Shown: piece after piece, positions 17,190 to 41,974 of the stretch
Position numbering within the stretch: position 1 is the first letter of the stretch
Layout: each line of letters starts with the position of its first letter
NCBI GenBank assembly: GCA_029953675.1
Contig: JAMWBK010000001.1
Location: 1,426,001 to 1,490,000, forward strand
Direction of reading: 5' to 3'
DNA length: 64,000 bases
DNA from: Rhodosorus marinus CCMP1338
Taxonomy: Eukaryota; Plantae; Rhodophyta
Position numbers and translations under genes: made by a program
The notes under the pieces: model-generated
The model's database searches: none
What the model was told of the DNA's origin: nothing
Seen by the model: only the letters and a program-made list of their open reading frames with translations

Positions 17190-17790
17190 AGCCTTGTACG
17201 TAACTGTATCCTTTACTGGTCAGCTGCCTACTGCAGCGCAACACTAATTCTATCACTATCTAGGGAAATGATCAGGCTCAACCCGGGCTCCCTGGGTCAC
17301 TAGTTACGATAAAAAGAAAAATAAGGAATCAGCGGCTGCTCAGACTGATCCACCCGCAGAGAGCTTAGTGCGAGCTCTGCGTTGCCTGCCCAAAGTGTAC
17401 GGTTTACTTGCGCTCTCACGTCGCGTAACTTTTCCTGCTTTGTCAGCATATGGGCACACCCATCTCGTAGGAAATCCTGGGTGATTTGACCGGTTCTGCC
17501 AAAGGTTTCAATCGCTATCCGGATGAACACATCATCGGGATGTTCAGTCGCCATGGCCTCCTTGTAGTGCGCTAAATTCCATCTCTCAGCATGTTTCGTG
17601 GCGTATCCGTTGGTGTTGTGGCTCTTAGGTAGGTGTCGTGCTTGGAGGGGCGAGATTACGGTCACAACAATGGCAAAACGTTGCCATGTCCTAGGGTGGA
17701 TACCCACTAGATCAGGTCGCAGATTCGAGTTCGTAAAGTAGTCCATGGGTTCCTGATTGACCTCTCGAAATTGCCAATGGTTAAGCCATC
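17190..17790 (-). mobile_element. 5'-truncated family C copy (RLE half + 3' UTR)
   Basis: ORF 17300-17746 LRPDLVGIHP..SPL..HYK..IETFG; 3' UTR gctgcagtaggcagc..cagtaaag. Confidence 0.85.
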
Positions 17791-17929
17791 TTGCCAGCTT
17801 AGTACATATCTCATCATGGCGCCTTTGCCACAGCCCAGACCAGGTACACAGTGGTGAAATATTTGTACTTTTTTAGTACGGTGCGTACTATGACAGGTAG
17901 TACACAGCTCCGTCGTCCGTAATCCTAGA

Positions 17930-19325
17930 ATCGGCGGCGCAACAGTTGTCGAATATTCACCTGGATTCCCAGATCAAGCACTCTACACAGCGGCATGCCC
18001 GGCCATCGGGAACGGCAGTACACGCCGAGTTCAAAGTTCAGAAAGCCCCAGGCAGAGTAGAAGACGCTCACCTCCGAACCGTTGGACGCCCAGGCCCGCA
18101 GTTTCAGCAAGCTGCTCTCAGACAGCCGCACGTACGGTGGGAGGTCTTCCTGGGGACCAGAGACCACACCGGTACTCGCCACCCTCAGGAACGTACGACC
18201 CCTACGACAGGATGAGGTGGCCCCCTCTGACTTTACAACGGTTCTTTATCGAGCCTTAGGGCTCCCAAGCCCTTATGAGGTGCACGTGGACCTCATTGCC
18301 TCCCACGCCAGCTTGCTATGTCACCCGGACGCGATTCCGAAAAGCGCCATTACCCGGGGAGTTTGCATCCTCTACCCTGCGACATCCCGATCGACAAGTC
18401 AGCCTCTACACCGGTCAGGCCCTGGAGGTCGACAACTTGTTGGGTTACAATGAACGTCAACGCCTCGCACAAACGGACAACACGACACGCGGCCCAGACA
18501 ATGAAGAGGGAGATCGAACACATTGTTAGGATCCGCTCGAGGCTGAGCAGGAGGCAACTCTTCTTCAATACTCTCGCGGTGATACACGAGTATCTGGATG
18601 CAAGGCTCACCGCCCTACAAGCCGGGCAACCTCCAACATAGGTACCCGGGGAGAGTGCGGAACCCCCAGTGCCTGCAGCCCCTGCGAACGCAGACCCTGA
18701 AGCCTCGCCCTATCGAGGCGACGCACAGGCAGCCCGTGGGCAATCGAGAATCTGGGTGATTCAAGGGGACATCCATGTAACCAGGAGGATACACCAGAGG
18801 GCAACCCCCACGCGGAGCTTCTCTGCAACCTTCCGGAGCCTCCACAACCGAAGCGTTCGCGAGCACGCGTTGTCGGCACAATCCCAGATACGAAGATGAC
18901 CCCGGCACCTGTAGAGACCCCATGAGCCAACACCTTGCCACAGCCTAACCTTGACGGCAACCAACACCAGATGGACACAAGGGATAGTCAGGAAAAAAAA
19001 CAACACGCCCAATAATGCCCAGCAGACGTAGGGGAATCAAACGACGACGAGAGGAGCCTCTGTTCTTCTCCAATCGTCAAGACTGGATCAAACGCTGGAC
19101 GGACTTCGTAGACGACATTACGGAAGGAGGCATGCAAAGGACACGCATTACACACTGCCCGGTCCCCACAAGGCGCTTTGTGCCTCGCGCCCACGTCAAT
19201 ACTTGGAACCGCCTCCTCAGCGCTGCACTTGAGCTTTCCATAGCCAGCGCCGCACCAACGAACGCGAGCCTGCTCCTCGTTGGACTTCCAGGCCTGGTAC
19301 TAGGATACTCTGCCCTTGTCTGGGG
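17930..19325 (+). mobile_element. C-type element C1: decayed ORF1 and ORF2 N-terminus
   Basis: LATLRNVRP ORF1 motif (ORF 18082-18453); ORF2 start 19015 homologous to ORF 20914-21357. Confidence 0.8.
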
Positions 19326-19969
19326 TTGCAACAAACCCTCTCCAGAGAGGCACGCCATGCAGCTTTCCAAAGCCTGGTATCCCACAGGCAAATTTCGGCT
19401 GAAGATCGGGCCAGAATTCGGTCCGCAGCCGGCGCTGGATCAGGAGTGTGGTTACTGGAAATGCCGACGCTCGCGCCGAAAAAGCTGAGTACAGCAGAAC
19501 TGCAAGTGAATGTACGACAGCTGTTGGGTTTGCCGATACCGGGAATACGGACGTCGGGGAAGTGTACTAGTTGTGGTAGTAGTCATCGTACTAACGGCGT
19601 ACAAAGGTTTCACCACTGCCCAACATCGACGGGACTATGGCAGCGAAGGCACGACGAAATCTGTACGGAGCTGAAGCGATGGCTGAATCGCTGGAGTTTC
19701 ATCGACATTGAGCAACAACCGGAGGTGTACTTTGAGAACTACCGACTAAGACCGGATATCATTGCCACTCATCCCTAGTTCCAAAGATAGCGATAGGTGC
19801 TCTGCGAGTGGACCAGTTGGCGAATCCACTGGTCCCTGTTTTCGTTTGAACGTAGCATGAGACCCCGGTAGCGGGGTTAACGTAAGCTTTTCCCTAGATA
19901 GTAGTAGAACTAGTGATACGCTGCAGTAGGCAGCTGCGCAGTAAAGTTTACGGTTAAGCTAGTCTGGGG
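19326..19969 (+). mobile_element. 5'-truncated C-type copy (zinc knuckle + partial RLE + 3' UTR)
   Basis: CTSC..HHC..RRHDEI..RPDIIATHP; hairpin-rich UTR; gtctgggg at both flanks (19318-19325, 19962-19969). Confidence 0.85.
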
Positions 19970-20170
19970 CCAAGGACTCTTCCCAGAACCTGCGGCAGGT
20001 CACTTACCAGACGAGGTGGCGGAGGCCCTGGACTAGCTGCACAACACTGACAACACGACTCTTAAGAGCCGATGGGGTCCCACAAAAGCCGCTGATGAGG
20101 GCCTCCCGTCGATTGTGGCACGTCTTCCGCAGAGCAAGAGCCCAGGGCCCAGTGGAATGCCGAGGATGAG
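19970..20170 (+). mobile_element. RT domain-0 fragment of a C-type element
   Basis: Plus-strand frame reads GLFPEP...LPQSKSPGPSGM (cf. GRSPGPSGL in B); one internal stop; abuts C2 in inverted orientation. Confidence 0.65.
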
Positions 20171-22634: not shown

Positions 22635-22905
22635 ATTGGTAGACATTGATTAAGAGCAGTTTTTGGTTTCGTGAGGGTGTATGGTGCTGGCTTTTGGTGG
22701 TTTTGAGTCGCAATTGTGTTCTTCGGTGGGAGGCGCTTCTTTCTGCAGCCTTTCCCCCGCATCTTCTAGTGGTATGGTGCGTGCTGGAGGGTGCTAGCGC
22801 CCCTTGGAGGGCGTTGGTGGCTTTTCTTTGGTTGCAAACGTTGGGAACAAGTTCTCTTTTTGGGGGTTTCGTGGGGGAATCGGTTTTTCACACCTTCCAA
22901 TCGTT

Positions 22906-24048
22906 ATGGTTGGGGTTTCCCCACCCATTCCGGCGGACGGAGCCGTTCTCTCAGCGCGCGTGGAGCTCAGCGTGGGCGGGTTTAGTACCGCGGCCACCCT
23001 CACGGACTGCGCTGACGAGTTAGCCGATGGGATCTGCTCGAAACTGACGAGTCTTCTTGTGACTGCTTCCCAGGAACACCGCCTGCCCCTGCTGATCGCC
23101 TATTTGGAGCGCTTCTCCGCCTCCGCGCCTGCCCCATACCCCCCGGTGCCCGTCCCCGCGGATCCGCACGGTACAGCGGGGCCTGCCTCCACCCGACCCG
23201 AGCGCTCCGCTCCGGTCATTCCTGATTCCGACTGGCCTACCCCTATTCAAAGACAGACGCCTCCTGGGCCCGCGTCGGGCCCGAATCCTGCTCCCTCCAG
23301 TGCCCCACGTGCGACCTATTCGCAGGTCCTGCGCAGGGGCTCTTCTGAACAACGCACGACGGCAATGGTGCGTATGATGCCACAACACATCCCTATTGAC
23401 TCTTCTCGCCAACTATCTCCGTTCCACTTTGTTTGGATGACGAACGTGCGTCCCCAGCCCCCCTCTTGTGGTCGGGGCCGCGCGCCCGTCCACTACCGCG
23501 ATTTTCGCGACACCATGGCTTCCTCCCTTGGGGTCGCCCCGTCTGAATTCCTATATGTGGACTCCACGGGCCCTCATGCCTGTTTTATTGTTACTGACTC
23601 GGCTTACCAGTTCCTTCAATCGCTTGTAACAACCCCCGCGCCCCAGCGCTCTGCTCTGGCCAACATGATTCTGACTCGTCCTCACGTCTCTTTGTTTGTC
23701 GAGTTCGATCGTTTTGACGCCGGCTGGGTTCCTCCGTCGGCCTTGCAAAACCTGGATGCCTCGCAGGCTTCGGTTGTCGCGCTACACACTCATGCGGCGC
23801 GGCTCTCGCGCATACAGGCGAGCCTCTTCGCGCGTTTTCCTCCTCGCGGGGTCCTCCGCACCGCGCTAGAGGCCTTCTTCTCCACTGAGGCCACCCTGCT
23901 GGAAGCCCACCCTGCGTTTGACCTTCTGCCGCCGACTCCTGAGCACCCTTCCTCCCCTCGCCCTGTCTCCGAGGCTCGTGACAGAAGCACCATCGGCCTC
24001 TCCGAATCCGCTGGCTCTGGACACCCTCAGTCAAGACTCCGCTGCTGA
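22906..24048 (+). CDS. B1 ORF1 (unrecognised domain; frame open from 22804)
   Basis: Uninterrupted ORF; MVGVSP start and TYSQV..NVRPQ..DFRDT..SLG motifs shared with A ORF1. Confidence 0.85.
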   Translation: MVGVSPPIPADGAVLSARVELSVGGFSTAATLTDCADELADGICSKLTSLLVTASQEHRLPLLIAYLERFSASAPAPYPPVPVPADPHGTAGPASTRPERSAPVIPDSDWPTPIQRQTPPGPASGPNPAPSSAPRATYSQVLRRGSSEQRTTAMVRMMPQHIPIDSSRQLSPFHFVWMTNVRPQPPSCGRGRAPVHYRDFRDTMASSLGVAPSEFLYVDSTGPHACFIVTDSAYQFLQSLVTTPAPQRSALANMILTRPHVSLFVEFDRFDAGWVPPSALQNLDASQASVVALHTHAARLSRIQASLFARFPPRGVLRTALEAFFSTEATLLEAHPAFDLLPPTPEHPSSPRPVSEARDRSTIGLSESAGSGHPQSRLRC

Positions 24049-24185
24049 AAACCCTGTGTCTACTTTCTTCAGGTCTTTTAGTTCCTTCGTGCGCCCCCCA
24101 CGTAAGCGTCGTGCGGCTCCTAAGCCTCCCTCCGAGGCACCTCCTCCGGATATTCGATCTGCCTTCCCGACTGAGGGGAGGCCCG

Positions 24186-26279
24186 ATGTCTGAGTCTTCC
24201 TCCTCCGCGTGCGTGTCGTCCCGGTTACCCCTGTTTACCAGTGACCGCTCAGCCTGGCATGAGCGTGTTCTCTCGTGGTTTTCGCACCTTGTCGCCTCCT
24301 ACCCGGACGGTTCCCTTCCCCTTTGTCGTCAGAGCACGGCCGTACGGCTCCCTCGTCGACTTCATAAGCCCCTAGGATTGGTGTTGGATTTTCTCTGGCA
24401 GCAGGTCGCCGCGAACCCTCACTGCTCTCTTCGCTGGGAACTCTTGTTCTTTTTTCCCCGCCTCGTGCTCACCTCCTCTACCGTCCCCCTCAACCCACAT
24501 CCTCGCCGGGTCCACCCTCGCCGAAAACTGCAAATGTTCCTTTCCGGCGACTTTGAGGACCTCGAACGTCTTTATTTCGCTTCTCTCTCTTCCTTTTCTC
24601 CTAGTGCTCCCTCAGCTTTTAGGTCTTCTCGACAGAATCGGGCGCGTCACGCGGTGGCAGGCGGTGATCTGCGGCGGGCAGCCGGGATCCTCCAGCAGCG
24701 GCAACCTGTGGTTCCGTACTCCGATGATCTTTCTTCACCGCTCCGTTTGCTCTTTCCCTCGGAAGGCTCCCCTTGGGACTCCTCGTTTGAATCAGTGTTG
24801 GAAGAGTACCGCGCCGCGCCACATCCCAGTGCGCGGTTAGTGGTCAACCTGGAGGCGGTGCGTGAGTTGGTTCATGATGCTCCGAAGGGCCGTTCCCCAG
24901 GGCCCTCGGGGCTGCGGGTGGAATATCTCCGTTTCTTAAGTGATGAAGGTTTGAAGGCGTTGGCGTGGGTGGTCGAAGCGCTTGTGAATGGTGATCCCCT
25001 GTGTGAGTGTGCGTGGTTCTTGGTCGGGCGTTCGCAGTTGTGTCTGCTTTCGAAGCCCGGCCACACGGCCTCGAGCCCTGCTATTCGCCCTATTGGCCTG
25101 GTTGAGGTGGTCCGCAAATTGGCGGCGCGATGGTTAGTGAAAATCCTGGTTCCCGAATCCCGCCGTTTCTTTGGGCACGTGCAGTTAGGCGTGGGCTATC
25201 GTGGTGGCTGTGAGTTGTTGTCTGTTTTACTCCGTTCGGAAATGGCGTACTCCCCAGATTCTGGGCTCCTCTCTGTAGATTTTACCAATGCGTTCAACCG
25301 CGTCTCTCGTCCGGCTCTCATGCACGTGGTGCGCGAAGTCTTCCCTGTAGGCTTTCCCTTTGTTAGTAGACTTTATTCTCCGCTTGGTCGTGGGGCTACC
25401 TATGACACCCTTGGCGCTTCCTCACACACGTTTGCGGCGCGCACAGGGGTACAACAGGGTGATCCCTTGTCCCCTTTCCTACATGCCTGTGGACTACAAC
25501 TCGTCTTGCTTTGTCTTCGCTCCGAATTCCCGCAGGTTCGTACGGTTGCATACCACGACGACGTGTGCCTCCTGGGGCCCCCTGATACTCTAGCACTCGC
25601 TTATGATCGTCTCCGCTCCTTGGCTTCGCGGGTTGACTTGGAGGTTAATCATCACAAATCGTTCTACTGGGGAGGTGTAGCTGCACACGAGCAGCAGGTA
25701 CCTGCGTCGTTCCAGGATATTTGGAGACCGGATGGTTTTGTCCACTTAGGCATCCCCTACGGGTCGCCGTCCTTCGTTGAAGGCGAGTTGCGGCAGCTCC
25801 TCGGTAAGCACAGACAGCTGGTTGCAGAGCTTCGCCGGCTCCCTCCGGGCTTTCTCCAGTGCGCGTTGTTGCTGTATCGGTATTGTTGCAGTCAGCGGTT
25901 AACCTATTGGCTTCGCTCATTTCCAACTCATTGGGGCCGGTGGTTGGCCACTCGTGCGGATGCTGAAAGTTTCCGTGACCTGGGGTATTTTCTCGATGAA
26001 GAGCTGAGCGCTCTGGCGCGACCCACCTGTGATGTTGTGCGCGCCCAGGTAGGCCTCCCATTGCGATTGGGGGGACTGGGCCTCTGCAATCGTGTTGTGG
26101 TCCAACCTGCAGCCGCAGTAGGGGCCTGGGGAACCGCACTTCCCACTTTAAGCAGCTTGGGTATCTCGAAGTTCCGCAATTTGATGGCGAGCCTCTCGCG
26201 GGGTGTCTTGCTTCCCAGCGTACCGGAAAGCGCCCAAGAATTTTTTCTGGAGCTCCAAACCGCTCTGAATTCCTGTACT
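24186..26279 (+). CDS. B1 ORF2 5' part (reverse transcriptase)
   Basis: GRSPGPSGLR, IRPIG, VDFTNAFN, QQGDPLSP, AYHDD, LGIPYG, LGGLGL. Confidence 0.93.
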
Positions 26280-26327
26280 GTACTTTACTAGCATAGCCTG
26301 AAGCGCTACGCAAGGCGTGAAGATGAA

Positions 26328-29300: not shown

Positions 29301-29397
29301 CTTCCAAAGAAATCCACCGCCGGAGCCAACTCCGAAAACGCGTACGCCAAATGCCCCAGTCTCCGCCCTCCTTCAGGACATAAGACTGTAGATCCAT
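26328..29397 (-). pseudogene. A2 ORF2 (RT-zinc knuckle-RLE), frameshifted, stop codon TAG changed to TGG
   Basis: Pieces in ORFs 28836-29282, 28031-28822, 26148-27998, compared with A3 and A7. Confidence 0.85.
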
Positions 29398-29429
29398 AGG
29401 CTGCGACCTCGCAGCCGTGCCTGGAAACG

Positions 29430-30838
29430 CTAATCGTGCTTCTCCCCCTTAGACCCGGGGAGTCGGTCCTCGCTCTCTTACCTCCTATCCGCACCAAAGT
29501 CGTGAGCCGCCCACTCCGCGAGGCTCGCGGAACGGATCCCGCGGGCTTCAGCAAAGTAACCTGGGCGTCCTCCACCGCCATGCCCTCAGTCTGCTCCCCT
29601 TCCTCACCACTCTCGCTGGAAGTAGTGCTGGAAGCAGAGCCCTCCAAAATCCCCACCCGCTGCAGCTCTGTCTTGTAGCGCGAAGTCAGCACAAGTCGCC
29701 TCTCCAGATCGAAGAAACTGGAAACCGCCATGCGCAGGTGACGAAGGCCCGACCGGAACCGCTCCAACAAGATCCTCTCAAGGCGCTGAATCCGTAGCCA
29801 ATGGATCGCTGCCGCCTTCACGCTGCTCTCATGCTCAGAGAGCCCTGCCGTTTCTCCCGGAGACAGGAAATTGCCCGAGAAACGGTCAAAATCGAAGTGC
29901 AAAACCACCTGCGGGTTGCAGCGCAGCCACCGGGCGGTCTCAGGCCACTGCTCGGTAGGCTTCGCCAGCAAGGCCTCCAGGTACTTGGCGGCGGTTTCGG
30001 AGACCAAAAACAGCACATCGCGGCCCTCATAGTTTGCGAAGAAGAAATCACCCCGGCTGCACCCTAACGATTCCGCAAAAGTGTCCCGGAAGTCTCGCAT
30101 AGACGGAACCTGTCCTCGTGTAGTCTGGGGCCGGACATTTCGCACCCACAGAAATTGGAGAGTGGTCTCCACAGGTCCATCCTGAGGCTCGCGAGATGGT
30201 ATGAAACGGAGCATAGCCGCCGTACGTGTGGCAGTGGTGCCCTTCCGCAAGACTGATGCGTACGAAGCGCCCCCCTTGCGGCCACCACGTGCCCCCGAAG
30301 TAGCCGGAGCTGGTGACCACCTGAGGGCTGGTCCAAGAGAGGGAAGTCCACAGCTGCAGTCTCCTCCACACCGGTTGCCGCACAGTCACCACCACCATTG
30401 CCTCGAATCCCCGAGCGCTGAAGCGCGTTTTGGCCCGGCCTGCCGCTCCCCAACGTCGTACTGTCCTGGCGCAGAAGCAACAGCCCTCGCCTGTCCCGGG
30501 ACAGGTTCATGTTGATTGACCTGATGTTGACTGCCTTCAGCCAACGCTGCCACTCTGGGGCAATTCAAATTCTCCTCCGAATTTGAATTTGACCTGGCCA
30601 GCAATCCCGATTCCAGCCCACCTAGCTTCTGGGTGAGCTGAGGGAGCACTCCACGATCACTCGCAGCCGTGATCAGGCTGGTGACAGCGGAGATAAGTGC
30701 ACGCGCCTGGGTGCCAGAAGCGCCTTCCAAGTCAACCTCGGAAGAAAACGTGCCGCAGCTGAGGCGAACACGGAGTCCCCCACCTGGCAGTGCCTCCTTG
30801 GGAGGAGGCTCCGTCGGGCGCGGAGATATCCCTACCAT
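29430..30838 (-). pseudogene. A2 ORF1
   Basis: MVGISP start; SYASVLR..NVRPQ..DFRDTF motifs; in-frame TGA at 30386-30388; end inferred from A7. Confidence 0.75.
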
Positions 30839-31116
30839 CCTGAGGGAATGCGCAAAGGAAACGTTGCACCACGAACATGAAACCGCACCGAGAGAATAAT
30901 CGACCAAACCCAACCCAAATAGGAAAGGCCCCGCAACACACCCACCCGGAAGACAGAAGTAGTTGCAAATGCAAACGACGCCCCGCGGAAAATCGAGGGG
31001 AAGGCGTACCAGAGGAAGCGCTTCCCGTAAACGAACACGCTCGCGACCGAAAAAGAAACAAAACCCCAATCCTCGACAACAACCACCCCAGACTAGGACT
31101 TTACTCCCCCTGTACT

Positions 31117-32166
31117 AGGCTCCCCGAAACCGTTCAACCCCGTCTTCCTGACTGGCGAGCTGTATTTGACCGCTCTCGAGGCTCCGCCCCGGGGATTCGT
31201 CCTGCGCCTGAACCTGTTCTAGGGGAGATTGACCCAGTGGTTGCCGCAGAAGAAGAAGTTCCAGTTGATCCTCCTGATGATTCCCAGCGCGCTGGGAGCC
31301 GAGCTCAAGCACGCACGGATGCGCTGCAAAATATCCTTTCTTGGGACTTGCACCGTGCTGCATATGGCCGACTCCTCGCGCAGATGGTCTCATCTTCCCG
31401 CGCTCGCGCCCGCCTACGTAGTCTTGGAGGGGTTATTAGCTCTCAGTGGCTCATGACCGTACCAGCCTTTCCGCCACTCACACTGTCGGATTTCGAAGTG
31501 CGTACTTCCCTGCGCTTATACCTCGGCTTACATCAGCCCCCTTGGCCGTACGAGATGGGTTCGTCGTGCCCTCTCTGCTCTCAGACTGAAGACAACGCAG
31601 ATTTGGGCGCCCACCTGCTCGCTAGTTGCCCGGCGGTGAAAGGTGCTCGAACCCGCCGCCATACACGGATCTTGAACCTGTTATACCGGGAACTTCGGCC
31701 TATAGTCCGGCAAGCCGGTCTGGAAATCGAACGTGAGAAACCTTTACCCGTCCCGGACTTTCAAAATGATGAACGCCGTGTAGCCGACCTGGTGATCACC
31801 TGTGACGACAGCCGCCGTACCACATACGTTGATCTTGCTGTTCCTAACCCTCAAGCTAGTCGTTATCTCCCGGCTGCGGGGGAGCGCCGTGGATCTGCCG
31901 CCGCCAGCATGAGACGCCGCAAAGAGATCAAATACGCGGGGGCTTTGTCTTCCCCTGGTGTTCGTGCTTCGGCACTAGCACATCGCTTGGTACCCCTGAT
32001 CATTGAGTGCTTTGGATTCATGGACTCTGTTGGTTCTCGCTGGCTTCGGGAGTTGTTCCGCGAACGCCCTGACCGTCTTCAATCGTTGTTTACCCGCTTA
32101 AGTTTCCTGCTGTGGCGCATGAATGCCGCTTTGATGTTGGAGGCGCGAGTACTTCGCCGCGCTTAG
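31117..32166 (+). CDS. B1 ORF2 3' part (zinc knuckle + RLE)
   Basis: CPLC..HLLASC..RRHTRI..VADLVI..VDLAV..ECFG; rejoins 24186-26279 in frame (about 1047 aa). Confidence 0.92.
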   Translation, partial: RLPETVQPRLPDWRAVFDRSRGSAPGIRPAPEPVLGEIDPVVAAEEEVPVDPPDDSQRAGSRAQARTDALQNILSWDLHRAAYGRLLAQMVSSSRARARLRSLGGVISSQWLMTVPAFPPLTLSDFEVRTSLRLYLGLHQPPWPYEMGSSCPLCSQTEDNADLGAHLLASCPAVKGARTRRHTRILNLLYRELRPIVRQAGLEIEREKPLPVPDFQNDERRVADLVITCDDSRRTTYVDLAVPNPQASRYLPAAGERRGSAAASMRRRKEIKYAGALSSPGVRASALAHRLVPLIIECFGFMDSVGSRWLRELFRERPDRLQSLFTRLSFLLWRMNAALMLEARVLRRA

Positions 32167-32222
32167 TCTTTTTGTCCCCTCGGGGTTTTTTTTTTTCAGC
32201 CTCCGATTAAACCATTCGTTCG

Positions 32223-32520
32223 AATATCTTCGTAAAGGGCGGTGTACTTCGAGAACTTCTGCATGAAGTCCTGTAGAAAATTCTCTTCTGAAAGCGTTGA
32301 CGCAGTATCCATTGTATCCGCTGGATTATCACCACTGGTAACCTCATGTACATACTGCTCAGAGTTCTCTTCGATTTCCCCCTCCTCAAGCTGAGCAGCG
32401 GGGCAGCAATTGTCTCCTCCAGGGGGCACTCTCATCGCTCAAGGTTCCCTCCCCACCCCGGGAGGGGGGGGGGGTTCTCCAACGTTCGTCATCACTCTCA
32501 AATAATCATTTCTTATACCA
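32223..32520 (-). mobile_element. C2 5' end and ORF1 N-terminus
   Basis: ORF 32196-32435 ends ..ALYEDI across the TSD and continues at 22634 (EDIGVAVAD); linkage inferred from the TSD. Confidence 0.7.
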
Positions 32521-32546
32521 CTACCAGATTCCAGACTAACTTCCCA

Positions 32547-32620
32547 CCCCAGACTACCCCAGACTACCCCAGACTACCCCAGACCAACGTAACCGTCAGA
32601 CTAACGTACCCCAGACTAAC
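32547..32620 (-). repeat. (TAGTCTGGGG)n repeat at the 3' end of C3
   Basis: ccccagacta x3 at 32547-32576, variant at 32577, another unit at 32609-32618. Confidence 0.95.
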
Positions 32621-33369
32621 GTAACTTCAGATTAAAGTAACTGTAAGCTTTACTGGGGAGCTGCCTACTGCAGCGTAACACTACTTCTATCGCTATCTAG
32701 GGGAGTATTTACCGGAATCCCGCTACCGGGGTCTCATGCTACTTTCAAAAGAAAAAAGAGGGACCAGTGGATTGTCCAACTGGTCCACGCGCTAAGCGCC
32801 TAGGGCGGTCTCTGCATTACCTCGCCGTAGTTGCCTGTTGATCTGCGATCTTACATCGCTCAGCTCCTCGCTCCCGTGCAATAGGTGTTTGCAGCTGACC
32901 AGCAGAAACTCCTGTGCCATATGTTTCTACCGCAATTGGGATGAACTTGTCATCCGGGTGTTCTATCGTCATCGCCTGCTTGTAGTGCGCTTTCTTCCAG
33001 CTCTCTGCACATCTTGCTGAATATCCATTCTGCGCCTCACTTCGCAACAGATACTTCCCTTGCAGAGGAGACGCAACCGTCACGTCCAGTGCATATCGTT
33101 GAAATGTCCTCGGATGCGTAGCAATGAAGTCTGGCCGTAGCCCGTAGTACTTCTCTGGTTCCTGCTCGATGTCCAGAAAGTTCCACCTGTTCAGCCTGCT
33201 TGCGATCTCCGTGCATATCTCGTCATGCCTACGTTGCCACAGACCAGTCGACGTGGGGCAATGATGAAAGCGTTGTACTCCGTTTGCACCGTGTTTACCA
33301 CGGCATCGAGTACGCTTTTCCGTAGTCCGCAGCCCCGGAATCGGTTGCCCCAGTAGTTGTCGGATATAA
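32621..33369 (-). mobile_element. 5'-truncated C-type copy C3
   Basis: ORF 32817-33374 HHC..RRHDEI..RPDFI..LDVTV; 3' UTR hairpins as in 19780-19969. Confidence 0.9.
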
Positions 33370-33744
33370 CCCAAGACTAACGTAACCCCGTAGCCTTTAT
33401 TGGGCAGCTAGCTAATGCAGCGCATCACACGATCACTACGTACGCACTAATCAAACCTGGACTCCCTGTCCAGGAGTCTCATCTAAATTCTACTTAGGGG
33501 AAATATCGGTCTATCTGCGCGATCTTTCTCGATCGCGTGCTCAACTAGCGCAGCATTGTGCTGCCACAAAATGCGGTTTAATTGACCCCTCACCGACGAT
33601 AGATGGGAGTCACGATCATGCAGGTGCGTGCTCGCCGTTCGAAGAAATTCAAGGCTTGCCTCGCCCATTCGACCAAAACTCTCAAAAATGAACGGCACAA
33701 CAACCACATCTCGGTTTTCCCCCCTCAGCACTTCCTTATAATGC
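33370..33744 (-). mobile_element. Family D 3' part (RLE C-terminus + 3' UTR)
   Basis: LHYKEV..FESFGRMG..QLNRILW; tail cccaataaagg..ttacgttagtcttggg. Confidence 0.85.
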
Positions 33745-33758
33745 AACTGGACTTTACT

Positions 33759-36700
33759 GGACTTTACTAGCATAGCCTGAAGCGCTACGCAAGGCGTGAA
33801 GATGAACTAATAACTAGGGAGGGAAGCATGCAACCCCAGGCGCCGATGGCGCGCCTCGGAAAGCATGTCGCTGGAATATCGCCAAAGGGAGACACTTAAA
33901 CGCCTCAAGAGCGCCAAATATTCAGTAGGATGCTCAGCAAAACATTTCCGCAACCACTCTAAACCCGACTTATCGACGTGACCAAAGCTTTCCACAATGA
34001 ATGGCTGGAACCGGTGAGAGCGACCCTCAGCGCAAGGCAGACTGGCCATGCTCTCAGCATACCGTCGTTCCTTAACTCTTCGAAGGGCTGAAGCCGCGGC
34101 CCCCCGGCGGCGGGCGGCTGCGGTGAGGTGGGCGCTGGCCACGGGGCAGGTAATCGCAAGGTCCACATATGTTGAGCGTCTGGCAGCAGCGTCGGAGACG
34201 AGGAGATCGGCTATACAACGGGGCGGTGCAGAGTCCGAGATGGATCTGGGCAGTTCCGACTCAACCTCAACCGTATGCCCTATCCGAGTCAAAAATTCGC
34301 TGAGGATGTACTTGAGGCGAGTGTGACGCCTCGTACGGAGACCTCTCAACAGTCCGCAGGAACCCAGGAAGTGGTAGCCACAAGCGTCAATCCGGCTCTC
34401 ACATCCCTGACAGAAAGACGGCCGATTAGAGTGCCACGGAGCCTGTGGCAAACCGAGATAGATGCGTGCGGCAGAACGGAACTGGAAAGCATCGAGACGA
34501 TGACTCAATGACGACGGTAGAGTGGTTAACCACAAGTGTGAGAGGTGGCCTCCCATGCCGCGGAGACGAGCGGCAGTGGTAGGCGGCGTGAGAGGAGAAT
34601 TGAGCATGACTGTGTGAGCGGCACTGTGTTGGCCCCAGGTGAGGCTATGTTGAATCACATCAGTGCGGGAGCTCCACAATCGGCTCAAACCCGGGTAGTC
34701 TGCAACAGGGGACCCGGGGCTAGCCTCTCCGTCATCGGCAAGAACTCGGTCGAGGGGACAATCCTCAATCGCTTCAGCTCGTCCCCATAACAGCTCCCTC
34801 CAGGAACGAAAGCGGGACCGATTTGCGTCCGGCACGGCGTTGCACCTCCTGAACGCGTGTTGAAGACCATCATAAATTGTCAAAAGCGGGGGCGGCAGGG
34901 TCACTGGATCCTCGTTGGTCAAAGCTCGAGCCAAGAGGCAGGCACTTCGCATCCGGAAGGTCACCAACGTTCGCAGCGCGGTAGCCCAGGAGGCAACCGC
35001 CGCTGGCGAGCATACCAGCCCACGGTCTGCGACGCCGAATCCCCCTAATCGCAACGGTAGAGCGATCTGTGCACGAATAAAGTCCCTGTCGGGAGCAGCT
35101 TCAAGATCGAGGGGCTCATCCAAGAGCGTTCCCCAGTGTTGCAGGGTCATTTCGTCGGCTTTAGCCGCGATCCACGAGCCCCAAGCTGGAGGCAGGCTGC
35201 GCAACCAGTAGTTGAGTCTGGGACCGGCACAAAAGCGGGAAAGCAAGCAGGCCGATTGCAGCATGCTGTCGGGTAGGTGCTCAATGGCGTCGGTGAGTTG
35301 CTTGTGCCGTGCCAAAACTCGCTCGCAGGATGCTTGGACAAAGTTGTCAGTCCCCAATCCGACGCCGTGGTGTTCGAACCCTTCACGTTCGCTGATTAGT
35401 CGCAGAGTGGGTGGCAGAGAGTTCAGCGACACGTCCCTCGGGGGGAGAAAGCGACATTTTTCTGTTTCCACAGTCAAACCGACGCGACGTGCAATCGCTT
35501 CGATCGCGGTCAGTCCCCTAGCCAGGGTGTCAGGGGTGCCCAGCAATGTTACGTCATCGTGGTACGCGCAGATTCGAAGATCCGAGACCTCAGTCGAAAG
35601 ACGTAAAAGTACGAGCTGTAGGGCACAGGCATGAAGAAGAGGTCCGCAAGGGTCGCCTTGTTGGACGCCAGTATGTGCTTGAAAAACAGTGCCCTCCGTT
35701 GTCAAGTAGGGGAGGCTCTCCCCTCCGTAAATACCCGATAGAAACGGCCACGCCTCCGGAAACACACGTCGGAGCACCTCTAGCGCATGCGTCCGCGACA
35801 CGCTGTTGAATGCGTTCCGGAAATCAACCACCAAGACTCCCCACTCCGGCCTACTGGCGCGTTCTAGCTCGATCCCATGGGTGATCAGTTCGCAACCCCC
35901 AGAAAATCCCACCCCTACTTGCAAGGGCGCCATAAAAGCTGTGACGCGCTGGCGAAGGCGCTGGCATAGCCACCTCCCGGCTAACTTCCGTAGGCTCTCC
36001 ACCATCCCGATCGGCCGGAGACGCGGGTGGGCCGGCTGGTGGTCAGGTTTCGTGAGCAAGCAAAGCTGTGCCTGCCGGAGATGTTCCCATGGCGCGGACG
36101 CACCCGATACGCCCTGGAACAACTTGTTAAGGATCCTCAGAAGCGCGCTCTGGCCAGGCTGGCTCAGGGCCTGCAATAGCTCTGTTCTTAGTCCGGAGGG
36201 TCCAGGACAGCGTCCCCGACGCGAGGTACGAAGCAAATCCTCCAGGTCAGACTCACTGAGCGTCAGATCGATGCGAAACCTGGCCAACTCCGGACGGTCC
36301 AAGAATACCTCGAATTCAGGGGACAAATCCACGTCGGACTCAGGGAACAAAGACGACACCGTCTGGGCGAGACTATCATCGTAGGGGAGGACAGGCGCCT
36401 GGCCCTCCAAAACCCGCGCCGCTCGACTTAAATCGCCCACTGCTACCAATTTCTGTACTCGAGCTGGCACGGGCGACACTGTGCCATGCCGAGTCCGACG
36501 GGCGGATGGTGCTGACGACGCCAAATAGCTGCGCTGTAGTACTTCGAAGTCTCCCTTCAAGAACAGGGCCAGTCGGTCTCGTACTCGCCATCTGCGCTCC
36601 GATGTGTGAATGGGGGCCAGAATCATGCGCGGCATGACCCCCAGAAAAACCCAAATGACTGTGTCCCGAATGTTGCGAGCCAGGCTCGTGAAGATGAAAT

Positions 36701-36761
36701 CGAGAATGGTTCCAGCTACCAGAAGGTCTCCACGAGGAAGGACGACTGGGGGAATGCCCCA
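33759..36761 (-). mobile_element. Family A copy A3, 5'-truncated just inside ORF2
   Basis: Flanked by the 14-bp duplication aactggactttact (33745-33758, 36762-36775). Confidence 0.95.
33807..36635 (-). CDS. A3 ORF2, 942 aa uninterrupted: RT + zinc knuckle + RLE (lacks ~80 N-terminal aa of the full ORF2)
   Basis: VDFRNAFN, QQGDPCGP, AYHDD, CQGC..HFLGSC, RRH, IADLLV..VDLAI, VESFG. Confidence 0.95.
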   Translation of the reverse strand: MPRMILAPIHTSERRWRVRDRLALFLKGDFEVLQRSYLASSAPSARRTRHGTVSPVPARVQKLVAVGDLSRAARVLEGQAPVLPYDDSLAQTVSSLFPESDVDLSPEFEVFLDRPELARFRIDLTLSESDLEDLLRTSRRGRCPGPSGLRTELLQALSQPGQSALLRILNKLFQGVSGASAPWEHLRQAQLCLLTKPDHQPAHPRLRPIGMVESLRKLAGRWLCQRLRQRVTAFMAPLQVGVGFSGGCELITHGIELERASRPEWGVLVVDFRNAFNSVSRTHALEVLRRVFPEAWPFLSGIYGGESLPYLTTEGTVFQAHTGVQQGDPCGPLLHACALQLVLLRLSTEVSDLRICAYHDDVTLLGTPDTLARGLTAIEAIARRVGLTVETEKCRFLPPRDVSLNSLPPTLRLISEREGFEHHGVGLGTDNFVQASCERVLARHKQLTDAIEHLPDSMLQSACLLSRFCAGPRLNYWLRSLPPAWGSWIAAKADEMTLQHWGTLLDEPLDLEAAPDRDFIRAQIALPLRLGGFGVADRGLVCSPAAVASWATALRTLVTFRMRSACLLARALTNEDPVTLPPPLLTIYDGLQHAFRRCNAVPDANRSRFRSWRELLWGRAEAIEDCPLDRVLADDGEASPGSPVADYPGLSRLWSSRTDVIQHSLTWGQHSAAHTVMLNSPLTPPTTAARLRGMGGHLSHLWLTTLPSSLSHRLDAFQFRSAARIYLGLPQAPWHSNRPSFCQGCESRIDACGYHFLGSCGLLRGLRTRRHTRLKYILSEFLTRIGHTVEVESELPRSISDSAPPRCIADLLVSDAAARRSTYVDLAITCPVASAHLTAAARRRGAAASALRRVKERRYAESMASLPCAEGRSHRFQPFIVESFGHVDKSGLEWLRKCFAEHPTEYLALLRRLSVSLWRYSSDMLSEARHRRLGLHASLPSY

Positions 36762-37212
36762 AACTGGACTTTACTAGCATAGCCTGAAGCGCTACGCAAG
36801 GCGTGAAGATGAACTAATAACTAGGGAGGGAAGCATGCAACCCCAGGCGCCGATGGCGCGCCTCGGAAAGCATGTGGCTGGAATATCGCCAAAGGGAGAC
36901 ACTTAAACGCCTCAAGAGCGCCAAATATTCAGTAGGATGCTCAGCAAAACATTTCCGCAACCACTCTAAACCCGACTTATCGACGTGACCAAAGCTTTCC
37001 ACAATGAATGGCTGGAACCGGTGAGAGCGACCCTCAGCGCAAGGCAGACTGGCCATGCTCTCAGCATACCGTCGTTCCTTAACTCTTCGAAGGGCTGAAG
37101 CCGCGGCCCCCCGGCGGCGGGCGGCTGCGGTGAGGTGGGCGCTGGCCACGGGGCAGGTAATCGCAAGGTCCACATATGTTGAGCGTCTGGCAGCAGCGTC
37201 GGAGACGAGGCA
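36762..37212 (-). mobile_element. Family A copy A4, short 5'-truncated
   Basis: Matches the A3 3' end; 5' junction fuses to D in frame. Confidence 0.95.
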
Positions 37213-38252
37213 CGCCTTCGCTTGTTCTGCTTGTTTCGCAGCATGCCCGCAGTTCCAGCTCGTATGTTTCAACTGATGCCTTTGAAGTGGCGATGTCACC
37301 ATCACATCCACCACGTACACGCATCCGCTCGTCGGGTGTCGTCCAACGATGTCTGGGAGAATTCCAGACCCAGAAAAGAACCCCTGAGGCTCTACTTGTA
37401 TCTCCGTGAAATTCCATAGGTGTAACCATTGACTCAGTTCGACCTTTAGCTCGTCGTGCCTCTTGGTTCGCATCCCCGATGACGTCCTGCAGTGGTGCAG
37501 CCGCTGGATCCCACGCACATCGTGTGGTTGCTCGCAGACTGTGCACGTGTGTGACCGGCCTAGTCCTTGCAGTGGTGGCCTTAGAAGCATCCGGATGCTC
37601 CACAACATCTCATTTCGTGTCAACTGCCGCGGCCCTGTACTAAGACAGTCGCGTAGCCAGACCCCGCACCCCGTTCCAGATGCCGATCCGATCCTATCCC
37701 GGTCTATGTCGTCCAGTGTTGAGTCTCCAGTAAGCTCCTCAAAGGCTTGTCGGTGACACTCTCGAGAGAGTGTTTTTTTGGATCGGACCGTCAAACCTTT
37801 GGGTACCTGCTGTGTCTTCTGCTGTGCCTTCGGCCGAGTCCTCCAGCGGTTGCCAATCGGCCAGCCTCTGGATGCGTGCACTGGTGGTCGCTGGCAAACG
37901 TCGTCTAATTGCGCGACTTGCCTGGACCAGTTGCCAAGCAAATGCATCGGTTGTCCATCGAAGTCGCACCCGTGGCAGCGATTCTCCTTGTGCTGCCGCA
38001 ATACGCTCCTGGGAAAGCCGTTCGAGGTAGCGTGATTCTGTGGTGTTCTCTTGCACGCTGTGTTTCCACCCTGCATGGAAGGGAACTGGTTGAATTCTCG
38101 TGCGCGTGGCAAAGCCAAGTCCTCCCCATCGACACGGGAGTCGAACCTGTTTCTCAACCGCTGCAGCCCCACGTGCGGTGATATCCTGGTGTTGACATAG
38201 GCCTCCACACATGCTTTCAAGCTCCGAGAGGGTGATCGCGTCCGCCTCGCCC
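37213..38252 (-). mobile_element. Family D 5'-truncated body (post-RT region, zinc knuckle, first half of RLE)
   Basis: RLPCRWGGLGF, CTVC..LHHC..KRHDEL..LPDIVG..VDVMV. Confidence 0.88.
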
Positions 38253-38520
38253 CCCCAGACTAATGTAGCTAGAAAGCGGTGAACTCGTAGTGGGGGTTCC
38301 ATGTTGACATCAAGCTCGTACTGCTCGCCCGTGTCGTGATGACGAACAACACTGTCGGGTCGAAGACAACTACTCTCAAAGAGCCCGGAGGGGTTCAACT
38401 TGAATCTCAAGAGGGTACCACCGTCGTAGGTGACGCGCAACGCAAGTTCATCGCGAATGCAATTATGTCACTGAGTCCAATTCCCGGCCGAGGCAGAGCA
38501 TTGGAATAAGCGTTGTGACA
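38253..38520 (-). mobile_element. Family E RLE fragment
   Basis: QRLFQC..HNCIRDEL..LRPDSVVRHHDTG..LDV; ends at ttagtctgggg. Confidence 0.75.
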
Positions 38521-38827
38521 AGAAGTATGCAACCAAGTTTTCCTGCCCAGTCAAATTCTGTCTTATTTATTTCAATTCCGAAGCTTCAAACCAAAGGTTT
38601 TCAATCCACAGACCATCGTAACCACAACCACGTAATAGTATCCATTATTGGGCAGCTGCCTAACGCAGAACAGTACTGCCTGGCCAATGTCACAGAGCAC
38701 CAAGCAACATCCAAAGTCATCTTTCTCTCCTGCATTGGGGCCAGCGCGCCGACTCGAGCTCCCAACGGATCCTCTCCAAACAGATTGTATGAGCTAATCT
38801 GGTACAACTCAAAAGAGGAAACATGCT

Positions 38828-41812: not shown

Positions 41813-41974
41813 TTTTGCTACAACAAAATCCCTCCCCCCAAAAAAATAAAACAAGGAAAAACCAGCGTAGAGCAGTTCTTGATTAGATTGTTTCGACTAA
41901 ATAATTTCCAACTGTTTCGAGGGAAAAAAAAAAAGCGAAACGGCGAGTCGGCAAAGTGTACCCCAGCAGTGGTC

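Follow-up and report, generated by a model that had tools for sequence, protein, structure and literature searches.

Retrotransposons of the red alga Rhodosorus marinus that probably insert at sites resembling their own 3' end

Introduction

MoTeR1 and MoTeR2 of Magnaporthe oryzae and the FoTeRs of Fusarium are CRE-like non-LTR elements with a REL endonuclease that insert in telomere repeats; for the CRE-like MoTeRs, telomere targeting is documented in PMC7367193. The elements analyzed here resemble MoTeR in combining a reverse transcriptase (RT) with a C-terminal restriction-like endonuclease under a CRE/SLACS label, in the head-to-tail arrangement of full-length and 5'-truncated copies with one to a few short G-rich repeats between them, and in internal "relics" that retain the repeat at their 3' end (PMC7367193). 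The MoTeR repeat, however, is the host telomere, and its arrays lie at chromosome ends in one orientation with the 5' end outward, whereas the Rhodosorus locus is interior, has mixed orientations and carries a repeat that is G-rich on the sense strand of the element and whose identity with the telomere we regard as doubtful. Furthermore, the MoTeR 5' end carries variant repeats, which are absent from the full-length family A element described below.

A second group comprises the LINEs Dong (TAA)n, Kibi (TC)n, Koshi (TTC)n and Waldo (ACAY)n, whose targets are said to be simple repeats with the sequence of their own 3' tails, as reportedly described by Kojima and Fujiwara. Dong is an RLE element of the R4 clade, whereas AP-endonucleases are used by Kibi, Koshi and Waldo; priming presumably relies on annealing of the RNA tail to the nicked target. 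The Rhodosorus elements likewise have a tail of tandem short units, appear to insert into the same unit and would thereby regenerate their target. The units of Dong, Kibi, Koshi and Waldo are microsatellites of 2-4 nt that pre-exist in the genome, whereas the Rhodosorus unit is a 10-mer that seemingly occurs mainly as the elements' own tails, besides rare chance matches in coding sequence.

R2 (28S rDNA), CRE1/2, SLACS and CZAR (spliced-leader genes) and NeSL each have one target site within a conserved, multicopy host gene. With R2, the Rhodosorus elements share the predicted endonuclease fold, the closest RT, a conserved structured 3'UTR and signs of template jumping at 5' junctions, but their apparent target is their own tail motif, and the stretch analyzed holds no rRNA, snRNA, tRNA or SL gene. 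Finally, nested or head-to-tail stacks of 5'-truncated copies are also formed by Cnl1 (Cryptococcus), Zepp (Chlorella) and GilM/GilT (Giardia). Arrays of these elements are terminal or subtelomeric, those of the non-LTR element Cnl1 being subtelomeric, and in keeping with this, paralogous segments of our locus are subtelomeric on two other contigs; the locus itself, in contrast, shows clean internal insertions, namely A2 with a target-site duplication and CD1 at a native motif. To our knowledge, tail-motif targeting is not a defining feature of Cnl1, Zepp or the Gil elements.

Results and discussion

The window, i.e., the entire 64-kb stretch under study (Rhodosorus marinus CCMP1338, contig JAMWBK010000001.1, positions 1,426,001-1,490,000), harbors non-LTR retrotransposons nested in one another in both orientations. 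Together with loci L002, L006 and L007, about 116 kb of the 31-Mb genome were read, the near-terminal loci L006 and L007 serving for comparison with the window. The RepeatMasker table of the genome paper assigns the label LINE/CRE(-SLACS) to 9% of the genome, and the putative placement of the elements in the CRE clade derives from the label 'LINE/CRE-SLACS' in its supplement. Copies of the C and D types (C/D) and sequences adjoining them are listed here.

17186-18990, minus strand: C3, C-type copy with RT remnant, nuclease domain and 3'UTR; degenerate tail ..CAGTAAAGGATACAGTTACGTACAAGGCTTGGGTACGTAGTCC
32546-32620, minus strand: tail-fragment array in mixed registers, TACGTTAGTCTG / ACGGTTACGTTGGTCTGGGG / (TAGTCTGGGG)x3
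32621-33369, minus strand: C-type copy, 5'-truncated, beginning right after the D2 tail
33370-38252, minus strand: D2, D-type copy with tail CAATAAAGGCTACGGGGTTACGTTAGTCTTGGG, in two parts (38252->37211 and 33746->33370)
38253-38262, minus strand: motif TAGTCTGGGG just upstream of the D2 5' end
38263-38589, minus strand: X, nuclease-domain fragment of another CRE-like element, 5'-truncated, starting directly after the D3 tail
38590-38680, minus strand: D3, short D-type 3' fragment with tail CAATAATGG..GTTACGATGGTCTGTGG

Within family A and within C/D, the copies have a common 3' end and variable 5' truncation, and none has LTRs. Pfam RVT_1 was detected in the A and B ORFs and RT remnants were present in element M and in C3; the best PDB matches of the RT were R2 and LINE-1 ORF2p, placing it closest to R2 and L1. 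Downstream of the RT, the motifs C..C..H..C, RH(D/N), (R)PD and (D/E)V were kept across 12 aligned sequences. The AlphaFold core of this C-terminal domain, modeled from the C-type copy at 32621-33369, reached a pLDDT of 80-97, and a Foldseek search of the PDB with the nuclease domain model returned R2 proteins for all top six matches (probability 0.95-1.0), while a sequence-only PDB search with the same domain gave no match. The model thus predicts a CCHC motif and a PD-(D/E)XK restriction-like endonuclease of R2-like fold. Exo_endo_phos (AP-endonuclease) was found in none of the long A or B ORFs. The 3'UTR is structured and conserved. The nearest database proteins, which are unnamed and in part come from the red algae Pyropia and Porphyra, showed at most 34% identity. 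A gene look-up revealed that the A ORF is absent from the record as a called gene and returned no paralogues elsewhere of a 333-aa ORF.

TAGTCTGGGG is the 3'-terminal repeat of one R2/CRE-type element lineage in R. marinus, which comprises C/D and at least one further subfamily. In its fuller form the terminus reads GTTACG-TTAGTCT(G/T)GGG and is sometimes reiterated, window copies carrying 1 to ~4 motif units. As the earlier note had described for copies ending in the motif after CARTAAAG..GTTAC, of five C/D-type 3' ends detected in the window, four conform to CARTAAAG..GTTA(C/A)..T(A/T/G)GTCT(G/T)(G/T)GG; the exception, at 17211, is degenerate in its tail. The conforming tail is present elsewhere in the genome (L006, L007), and (TAGTCTGGGG)3-7 also occurs on three metagenome contigs of a distinct though related organism, in each case immediately behind a similar 3'UTR end. 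With up to one mismatch allowed, TAGTCTGGGG was matched 15 times in the window, as against 3.3 ± 1.7 expected, and all motif coordinates given in the earlier note proved correct. That the pattern reflects chance, or the repeated counting of one repeated sequence, is highly improbable: although several matches are copies of one thing (five lie in a single array, and the match at 30121, internal to A, recurs in every long A copy), the observed count was reached by none of 100 shuffles, and the motif occupies the exact 3' end of subfamilies otherwise diverged to 64-82% nucleotide identity and recurs at elements on other contigs as well as in the other organism. No insertion accompanies the matches at 30121 (with its twin in the second A copy), 10813 and 22384, each of which lies inside another sequence; those at 1566 and 13886 are TAGTGTGGGG variants within a 3.1-kb duplicated segment. 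A structural-RNA target (tRNA, snRNA, SL, rRNA) was rejected, as neither a tRNA nor any Rfam family was found in the window. In the literature, the rotations of the 10-mer matched only primers and, by chance, a viral sequence.

The clearest insertion concerns the following features.

19316-19325, plus strand: native target motif TTGTCTGGGG in H, encoding ..L-V-W-G..
19326-19969, plus strand: CD1, C-type copy, 5'-truncated and internally deleted
19032-20167 (end ~20167), plus strand: H, host element, N-terminal region of a CRE-like ORF, split by CD1

The insertion point of CD1 is precisely at the 3' side of a native T(T)GTCTGGGG that belongs to the coding sequence of another element, and this is the sole clean C/D insertion with a paralogous empty site. 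The copy starts at a position matching residue 840 of P0001, has the nuclease motifs CCHC and RHD..RPD and a 3'UTR hairpin (19810-19835), and ends in the tail CAGTAAAGTTTACGGTTAAGC-TAGTCTGGGG, with the motif at 19960-19969. The Trp encoded by the upstream TTGTCTGGGG is the conserved W of a 'W..LFP' motif, and 'GTC TGG GG|C CAA' in H aligns collinearly with two paralogues that lack an interruption, 'ACC TGG AAC CAG' (L006) and 'ACG TGG AAT GCT' (M). In phmmer searches, the halves of H before and after CD1 shared their homologues and their reading frame, PGPSG motif included, and retention of exactly one motif copy puts both halves in a single frame. Of the 5' junctions that the earlier note had placed directly behind the motif, those at 19326, 33369 and 38252 were confirmed as 5' truncation points, whereas 19970 is the 3' junction of CD1, where H resumes on the plus strand, in frame and collinear with its homologues. 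A model in which the sequence from 19970 onward belonged to the minus-strand element M, with CD1 in the RT of M, was rejected since the plus strand gives PGPSG in frame with H; what looks like a minus-strand ORF below 20168 is H read in antisense.

A second site adjoins D2. This copy is split by two tandem copies of family A (A4, 36763-37210; A3, 33747-36760), and its ORF is collinear over the A insert (..AKQAEQAK|A|HYKEVL.. versus ..SWKKAHYKQ in the C copy). Upstream of its 5' end lies X, which is related to D2 (phmmer E = 7e-10), has a paralogue in L006 and carries a native TTAGTCTGG at the insertion point or at most 8 nt from it. The motif at 38253-38262 is ambiguous, since it can be read as native X coding sequence (..T-L-V-W-G) or as an added 11-nt tail unit, and both reconstructions keep the frame. 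The previous observation that both target sites read LVWG follows from the shared bases; it refers to native codons in H, while those next to X may be native or added. A phmmer alignment aimed at the continuation of X past the array gave no significant extension beyond the junction, and L006 was uninformative as an empty site for D2, its homology with X ending 130 nt short of the junction. D3 lies just downstream of an RTX gene stop codon, with a like arrangement in the paralogous subtelomeric locus L006. Including the CD1 and X sites, 2 of the 5 non-tail GTCTGGGG sites in the 64 kb have a C/D insertion at or adjoining the site, and the remaining 3 are empty.

At the opposite end of D2, the C-type copy at 32621-33369 ends in ..CAGTAAAGCTTACAGTTAC..GTTACGTTAGTCTGGGG and is followed by the tail-fragment array, which had been noted before as tandem units near 32547-32620 and was recovered at 32546-32620, with TGGGAAGTTAGTCTGGAATCTGG as the subsequent flank. 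Fragments in 12-, 17- and 21-nt registers include the GTTACG of the element itself.

Families A and B provided a further view of such junctions.

26284-31083, minus strand: A2, full-length A element (~4.8 kb) inserted in B
31086-31095, minus strand: captured single C/D tail unit TAGTCTGGGG at the A2 5' junction
31096-31105, minus strand: captured single A-type tail unit AGTAAAGTCC at the A2 5' junction
~22650-26272 and 31110-32222, plus strand: B, a relative of A (5' limit approximate)

B shares 41% amino-acid identity with A, and its ORF is in frame across the A2 insertion; a separate short element 'E' (31109-32222) was rejected because this sequence is the 3' part of B, whose ORF continues over A2. 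On either side of A2, CTGTAC is repeated as a 6-bp target-site duplication (26273-26278, 31110-31115); in the B copy at 54414-55526, the site is empty and reads AATTC-CTGTAC-TAG. In C/D copies, a target-site duplication is indistinguishable from the regenerated motif. The A-type unit at 31096-31105 is followed by GGGG and then by the right copy of the duplication. The motif at 31086-31095 had been taken for a part of the A 5' terminus; it lies, however, between the duplication and the 5' end of A at 31083, and the second full-length A copy starts at GTTGTTGTCG with no motif in front. It is thus foreign to A and to the target, and the two captured tail units between the duplication and the A2 5' end point to template jumping.

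Head-to-tail stacking is not specific to C/D but also occurs in family A, as 7-9 of the 11 A copies, which have a common 3' end and varied 5' ends, come after a tail, tails of other families included. In cross contacts, a B-type tail (that of the B 3' part) is followed in one case by an A copy and in another by a B-like element. These findings bear on an alternative in which template-jump concatenation is the only process: the motif would simply be the RNA 3' end, the RT at the (truncated) 5' end of one RNA would jump to the 3' end of another, and arrays would arise from single integration events with no target preference. R2 reverse transcriptase reportedly performs template jumping in vitro, which is said to have been established by Bibillo and Eickbush. 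The A2 junction fits this account, with A-tail and C/D-tail units that the B empty site shows to be no part of the target, and so do the contacts of A copies with tails, the A3/A4 tandem in one D2 site (99.8% identical) and a CGCTT microhomology to an internal 3'UTR site at one A junction. As a sole explanation it is nonetheless unlikely: TTGTCTGGGG in front of CD1 is native host coding sequence that differs from the tail unit by one base and encodes a conserved Trp, X has native motif-like sequence at its site, and 2 of the 5 native sites are occupied.

We favor the reading, at a probability of roughly 60%, that C/D elements insert at sites resembling their own 3' end and that captured tails add to the pattern. 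Integration would proceed by target-primed reverse transcription at sites like the 3' end of the RNA, with the nicked target strand annealing to the terminal UAGUCUGGGG of the element RNA; the endonuclease may read the motif as well. The old motif would remain 5' of the insert, which would supply a new motif at its own 3' end, so that each insertion would regenerate the target. Existing tails would then be perfect targets and give rise to head-to-tail stacks of 5'-truncated copies, extreme 5' truncation leaving tail fragments of 10-21 nt as at 32546-32620. In a second process, of which the A2 5' junction is an instance, the RT at the cDNA end can jump to the 3' end of the RNA of another element and copy a single tail unit.

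The initial proposal of sequence-specific integration at a regenerated motif is supported by the H and X sites, the occupancy of native sites and the R2-like fold, but part of the pattern on which it was built consists of captured tails. The parallel behavior of family A supports insertion at tail-like sites. Its tail is a 10-nt unit of its own, (AGTAAAGTCC)n, distinct from the C/D tail, and the A2 target GTACAG resembles GTCCAG of this tail (3' junction ..AGTAAAG-TACA-GTACAG). Against tail-like targeting, the X site can also be reconstructed with no native upstream motif, most cases of a motif followed by a 5' junction are tail-to-head contacts that template jumping explains equally well, three native sites are empty, and no motif is visible before the 5' end of D3. 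Moreover, contacts between different families argue against strict base-pairing specificity.

We also considered whether TAGTCTGGGG is the Rhodosorus telomeric repeat, which would make C/D MoTeR-like telomere-targeting elements of the CRE clade and the window an internalised former chromosome end. The unit is telomere-like in shape, with 10 nt and a G4 run, and similar telomere units are TTAGTCAGGG of Yarrowia and TTAGGTCTGGG of vespids. Both the window and metagenome contigs contain perfect arrays of 3-7 units, one of which runs G-strand-outward to a contig end. Part of the window (38396-48565, including RTX genes) is 80-94% paralogous to contig 12 at a distance of 24-45 kb from the end of that contig. 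On contig 7, another RTX paralogue sits 9-30 kb from the end, in a region dense in CRE-like copies. The loci read came as close as 24 kb and 9 kb to the respective contig ends. The window, however, is 1.43 Mb from the nearer end of a 3.8-Mb contig, the largest, and contains elements in both orientations. All arrays seen attach to an element tail, the 12-, 17- and 21-nt fragments with GTTACG would not be expected from telomerase, and the equivalent (AGTAAAGTCC)n tail of family A, whose core is likewise found in the metagenome organism, is plainly not telomeric. If contig ends are true chromosome ends, the G-rich strand points inward in 4 of the 5 motif copies of L006/L007, and 42 kb of near-terminal DNA held no multi-unit array. 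The genome paper reports telomeres on 12 contigs; neither the paper nor its supplements state the repeat sequence. A telomeric nature of the motif is improbable, and we are similarly sceptical of the joint reading, in which a previously unreported 10-nt red-algal telomere unit, C/D as a red-algal MoTeR counterpart inserting in G-strand sense, and a nest marking either an ancient end-to-end fusion of chromosomes or a misjoin in the assembly are combined.

Conclusions

CRE-type elements, which make up ~9% of the R. marinus genome, have so far been labelled only automatically. Our analysis suggests that one lineage chooses targets matching its own 3' end, and it shows that foreign tail units are captured at 5' junctions of these elements; together, tail-like targeting and tail capture would explain the dense head-to-tail nests. 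The case appears to be a neat but fairly ordinary site-specific retrotransposon. If the motif were the telomere repeat, both this telomere sequence and a telomere-targeting retrotransposon lineage beyond fungi and insects would be new. As a compact natural system, a 10-nt motif and an R2-like nuclease may allow the share of RNA-target annealing to be weighed against that of the nuclease in the specificity of RLE elements, a question relevant to present efforts at retargeting R2-type elements.

Elements and genomic setting

Rhodosorus marinus CCMP1338 is a unicellular red alga of the Stylonematophyceae with a 31 Mb genome in 13 large contigs, 12 of which carry at least one telomere (PMC10250338). 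Its RepeatMasker table lists 4036 'CRE/SLACS' LINE copies, corresponding to 2.82 Mb or 9.04% of the genome (PMC10250338), and the window thus represents an interior nest of such elements. No tRNA and no Rfam-recognisable RNA gene was found in its 64 kb. Families A and B, whose tails differ from that of C/D, contain Pfam RVT_1 domains; the closest solved relatives of their reverse transcriptase (RT) in the PDB are R2 and LINE-1 ORF2p. Database relatives are unnamed proteins of at most 34% identity, some of them red-algal (Pyropia and Porphyra). C/D copies keep what lies downstream of the RT, and an alignment of 12 sequences revealed a C..C..H..C knuckle, RH(D/N), an invariant Asp in (R)PD, and (D/E)V(T/S)V. 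A sequence-only search of the nuclease domain against the PDB gave no match. The AlphaFold model of the copy at 32621-33369 had a confident core (pLDDT 80-97 over residues 40-150), and the best six PDB matches in a fold search with this model were all R2 retrotransposon proteins (probability 0.95-1.0). Taken together, the RT relatives, the aligned C-terminal motifs and the R2-like predicted fold identify the elements as RLE-type non-LTR retrotransposons. The CRE-clade label comes from the RepeatMasker output in the genome paper, and membership of that clade is putative.

Two further components of the window were observed. A weak Pfam RVT_2 (copia-type) match at 11705-12136 (+), below the gathering threshold, possibly represents part of an LTR element within this nest. 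A 3.1-kb segment is duplicated (134-3262 and 12472-15587, 97% identity), each copy with an annotated gene, a 333-aa ORF that has neither a Pfam domain nor a homologue outside this genome.

The motif is the 3' terminus of C/D elements

A re-scan of the window for TAGTCTGGGG with at most one mismatch yielded 15 matches, compared with 3.3 +/- 1.7 expected from shuffles (0 of 100 shuffles reached 15), and every motif coordinate in the earlier note proved correct. Scanning for the conserved 3'UTR end located five C/D-type 3' ends:

19946, plus strand, C/D-type 3' end
38643, minus strand, C/D-type 3' end
33395, minus strand, C/D-type 3' end
32648, minus strand, C/D-type 3' end
17211, minus strand, C/D-type 3' end

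Four of them read CA(A/G)TAA(A/T)G, about 10-35 nt, GTTA(C/A).., T(A/T/G)GTCT(G/T)(G/T)GG, with the motif as the last 10 nt; the fifth is degenerate. The motif therefore represents the final 10 nt of C/D elements, as had been proposed. At 32546-32620 (-), the tail is followed by the fragments TACGTTAGTCTG and ACGGTTACGTTGGTCTGGGG and then by three perfect 10-mers; the fragments are in mixed registers and some contain the element's own GTTACG. C/D-type 3' ends that lack the motif exist as well: at 5512-5532 (-) of L006, a near-terminal locus on contig 12, a D-type tail breaks off at ..GAATAAAGGCCACGGGGT, lacking the TTACGTTAGTCTGGGG part, and a 5'-truncated A-like copy comes directly after it.

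The 3'UTR is the best-conserved part of C-type copies. It harbours a hairpin, GGACCAGT..ACTGGTCC, at 19810-19835 (in the C-type copy CD1), 32760-32790 (-) and 17320-17350 (-); among the four copies compared, two compensatory pair changes were found, both in C3 (C-type copy, 17186-18990, -). A second small stem, CCCCGG..GCGGGG, lies downstream, and judging from sequence the two may form the RNA element recognised by the RT.

Insertion at a native motif copy and at a second site

The following features define the first insertion:

19032-19325, plus strand, host element H, N-terminal region of another CRE-like ORF (by homologue alignment)
19326-19969, plus strand, CD1

CD1 starts at the equivalent of residue 840 in the homologue P0001 (1155 residues). 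When exactly one copy of the 10-mer is kept, H before 19325 and the sequence after 19970 match a common set of homologues, with frame and order preserved, including a strongly conserved ..P.(S/G)K.PGPSG(L/M).. motif at ~20146-20166; with zero or two copies kept, the halves of H are out of frame with each other. This frame test also rejected a minus-strand element from 19970 onward, and the position, previously read as a 5' junction, is instead where H resumes. Across the insertion, H reads GTC TGG GG|C CAA GGA CTC TTC CCA, an uninterrupted paralogue in L006 reads ACC TGG AAC CAG CTC GAA GAC CTC TTC CCG, and M, a minus-strand element, reads ACG TGG AAT GCT. The TGG in H encodes the Trp of a conserved 'W..LFP' motif present in all homologues. 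The frame test and the collinear paralogues with the conserved Trp thus show that TTGTCTGGGG is native coding sequence of H, with CD1 placed exactly after its last G. No separate target-site duplication accompanies CD1. Either there was no duplication at all, or the RNA tail templated part of an 8-bp GTCTGGGG duplication, and this would account for T-T versus T-A at position 2.

At 20167/20168, H (+, ending just past the PGPSG motif) abuts M (-, ending at RT motif A). The 3' half is missing from each of them, and simple TPRT does not account for this inverted 3'-to-3' junction. M and C3 could be parts of a single element interrupted by the H block.

The second site involves X, a nuclease-domain fragment (phmmer against the D-type copy D2, E = 7e-10), in this minus-strand order:

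upstream of X, minus strand, tail of the D-type copy D3 (..GTTACGATGGTCTGTGG)
38589->38263, minus strand, X
38262->38253, minus strand, TAGTCTGGGG
38252->33370, minus strand, D2, split by two A copies
33369->32621, minus strand, C copy, then tail fragments and TGGGAAGTTAGTCTGGAATCTGG..

The original X can be rebuilt in two ways, both in frame and both with a Trp that aligns with D2 Trp97. In one, ..ACA TTA GTC TGG GAA GTT AGT CTG GAA.., the motif would be native and the duplication TGGG; in the other, ..ACA TGG GAA GTT AGT CTG GAA.., the upstream motif would be an added 11-nt tail unit. Native X has TTAGTCTGG at the insertion point or within 8 nt of it in both rebuilds. Non-tail GTCTGGGG occurs five times in the window (19318, 38260, 10815, 30123 and 22391), and two of these sites bear a C/D insertion at the 3' edge, the chance probability at a given site being of the order of 10^-4.

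Tail units at 5' junctions and stacking across families

The idea that the motif belongs to the 5' terminus of family A did not hold, given a second full-length A without a motif in front and an empty site in B without tail units. This A copy, at locus L002 upstream of the window, aligns from GTTGTTGTCG.. (window 31083) and is preceded by GGCTATGCTAGTAAGGA. A2, the full-length A copy at 26284-31083 (-), is inserted into B in reverse orientation; the B ORF runs in frame from 26272 to 31110-32222, and the latter was consequently dropped as a separate element 'E'. The empty site, AATTC-CTGTAC-TAG, is seen in the B copy at 54414-55526, and CTGTAC on both sides of A2 (26273-26278 and 31110-31115) constitutes a 6-bp target-site duplication. 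In A2 sense, the upstream duplication copy is separated from the 5' end of A by GGGG-AGTAAAGTCC-TAGTCTGGGG-TG, which comprises one A-type and one C/D-type tail unit. Since the empty site lacks them, these units came with the insertion. The simplest reading is an RT template jump from the 5' end of the A RNA to the 3' ends of other element RNAs. Template jumping is established for the R2 RT in vitro, and 31084-31115 with 26273-26283 appears to be a direct footprint of jumping onto the 3' ends of other RNAs. The A2 3' junction reads ..CTAGTAAAG-TACA-GTACAG; because the target GTACAG resembles the usual A tail end GTCCAG, priming by tail-target annealing fits family A too.

The 3' terminus of family A is formed by a 10-nt unit of its own, (AGTAAAGTCC)1-5, or by relatives such as (CCAATAAAG)n. 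Tails of this kind, with units of 9-10 nt, were found in family A and its relatives at:

50599-50680, window
33748-33770, window
5660-5690, window
19102-19150, L006
2578-2614, L006

The units contain the poly(A)-signal-like AGTAAA or AATAAA, and no poly(A) tail is present on any copy. Seven of 11 A copies start directly after a same-orientation tail of A or another family, one follows an inverted A tail, and one is joined to an internal 3'UTR site via CGCTT microhomology. At L007, the near-terminal locus on contig 7, a B-type tail precedes a B-like full-length 5' end, and two tails flank a C/D-type fragment of 66 nt. The motif does occur at 5' junctions, as the earlier note stated, yet this is not special to it: since A copies and the B-like 5' end follow tails too, the tail-then-5'-junction arrangement is shared by all these families.

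Tracts rich in G/C (CCCCCCCCCCCTCCCGGGGTGGGGAGGG and relatives) recur within apparent 5'UTRs of full-length elements, at 32440-32480 (-) and at L007 16440-16475. TTGTCTGGAG occurs ~100 nt into a B-like 5'UTR at L007, and TTAGTCTGGAA at window 32530-32540.

The motif and the telomere

The motif might alternatively be the Rhodosorus telomere repeat, with C/D as telomere-targeting elements; we consider this unlikely. The genome paper and its supplements do not state the repeat sequence (PMC10250338). The unit looks telomere-like and perfect arrays exist, but all arrays seen are joined to an element tail, and some tail fragments have registers that would not result from telomerase activity (GGGG-TTACGT before a 5' junction in L006; TAGTTTGGGG-TTACGTTAGTCTGG in L007). 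The equivalent tail repeat of family A is plainly not telomeric. A subtelomeric connection is suggested by intronless RTX (HemolysinCabind) genes:

38828-40081, minus strand, window, RTX gene
42535-43881, plus strand, window, RTX gene
6857-8191, L006, RTX gene
10001-11254, L006, RTX gene
10001-11407, L007, RTX gene

Window 38396-48565, which includes two of them, shows 80-94% identity with a stretch of contig 12 located 24-45 kb from its end; on contig 7, a third paralogue lies at 9-30 kb from the end, so that both located paralogues are near contig ends, and both near-terminal loci are full of the same elements. However, the window itself lies 1.43 Mb from the nearer end of its contig (3,806,663 bp), the elements occur in both orientations, of the five motif copies at the two near-terminal loci four have the G-rich strand pointing inward, and neither locus contains a multi-unit array. 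The segmental duplication (L006 1-11700), which pairs this interior locus of the largest contig with a subtelomeric region, takes in the D3 tail and the point where that tail joins X; it could stem from an old fusion of chromosome ends, a translocation or a misjoined assembly. Apart from Rhodosorus paralogues, the best database matches of the RTX genes are bacterial RTX proteins, suggesting horizontal acquisition.

Among JGI metagenome contigs scanned for three tandem units, three carried (TAGTCTGGGG)3-7, in each case directly after a similar 3'UTR end, ..GGGAATCTG..AAG..CGTA.TGCTC..(A)GTTCGG(G/A)G(G/T). In two of them the array leads into a common sequence that begins TAGTCTGG|TT(G/A)ATCAAAGG (L003 678-856 and L005 1467-1641, 95% identical directly after (TAGTCTGGGG)n, TAGTCTGG|TTGATCAAAGGGTCTCG..); this could represent either a full-length element's 5' end or a site specifically targeted in that organism. 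In the third, the array reaches the contig end with its G strand outward, and a cathepsin-like gene lies ~1 kb away. At the nucleotide level, these contigs have only the 10-mer in common with the window. They also carry AGTCCAGTCCAGTA-type repeats recalling the A tail, and the two repeat types together indicate that a related but different organism has both tail types.

Proposed mechanism and comparison

The motif thus terminates RLE-type retrotransposons, one C/D copy lies exactly after a native motif copy, a second site had native motif-like sequence, and tail units were captured at a 5' junction. We propose that the endonuclease nicks at or near the motif, whereupon the freed target 3' end would anneal to the terminal UAGUCUGGGG of the RNA and prime reverse transcription. 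The upstream motif would be retained and a new one added downstream of the insert; tails would therefore be preferred targets and arrays would grow. Very short products (10-21 nt) would yield tandem units, and template jumps the extra tail units at 5' junctions.

The closest systems are MoTeR/FoTeR, CRE-like elements with a REL-endonuclease whose arrays have short G-rich repeats as separators, LINEs whose target is a simple repeat matching their own tail exactly, the RLE site-specific elements R2, CRE and SLACS, and Cnl1-type stacked arrays. Unlike these, Rhodosorus C/D elements seemingly target mainly their own 10-nt terminus, plus chance matches elsewhere, rather than a host gene or, on present evidence, the telomere. 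Annotation of these elements is worthwhile for the barely described red-algal repeat landscape, and the C/D case bears on questions of RLE targeting.
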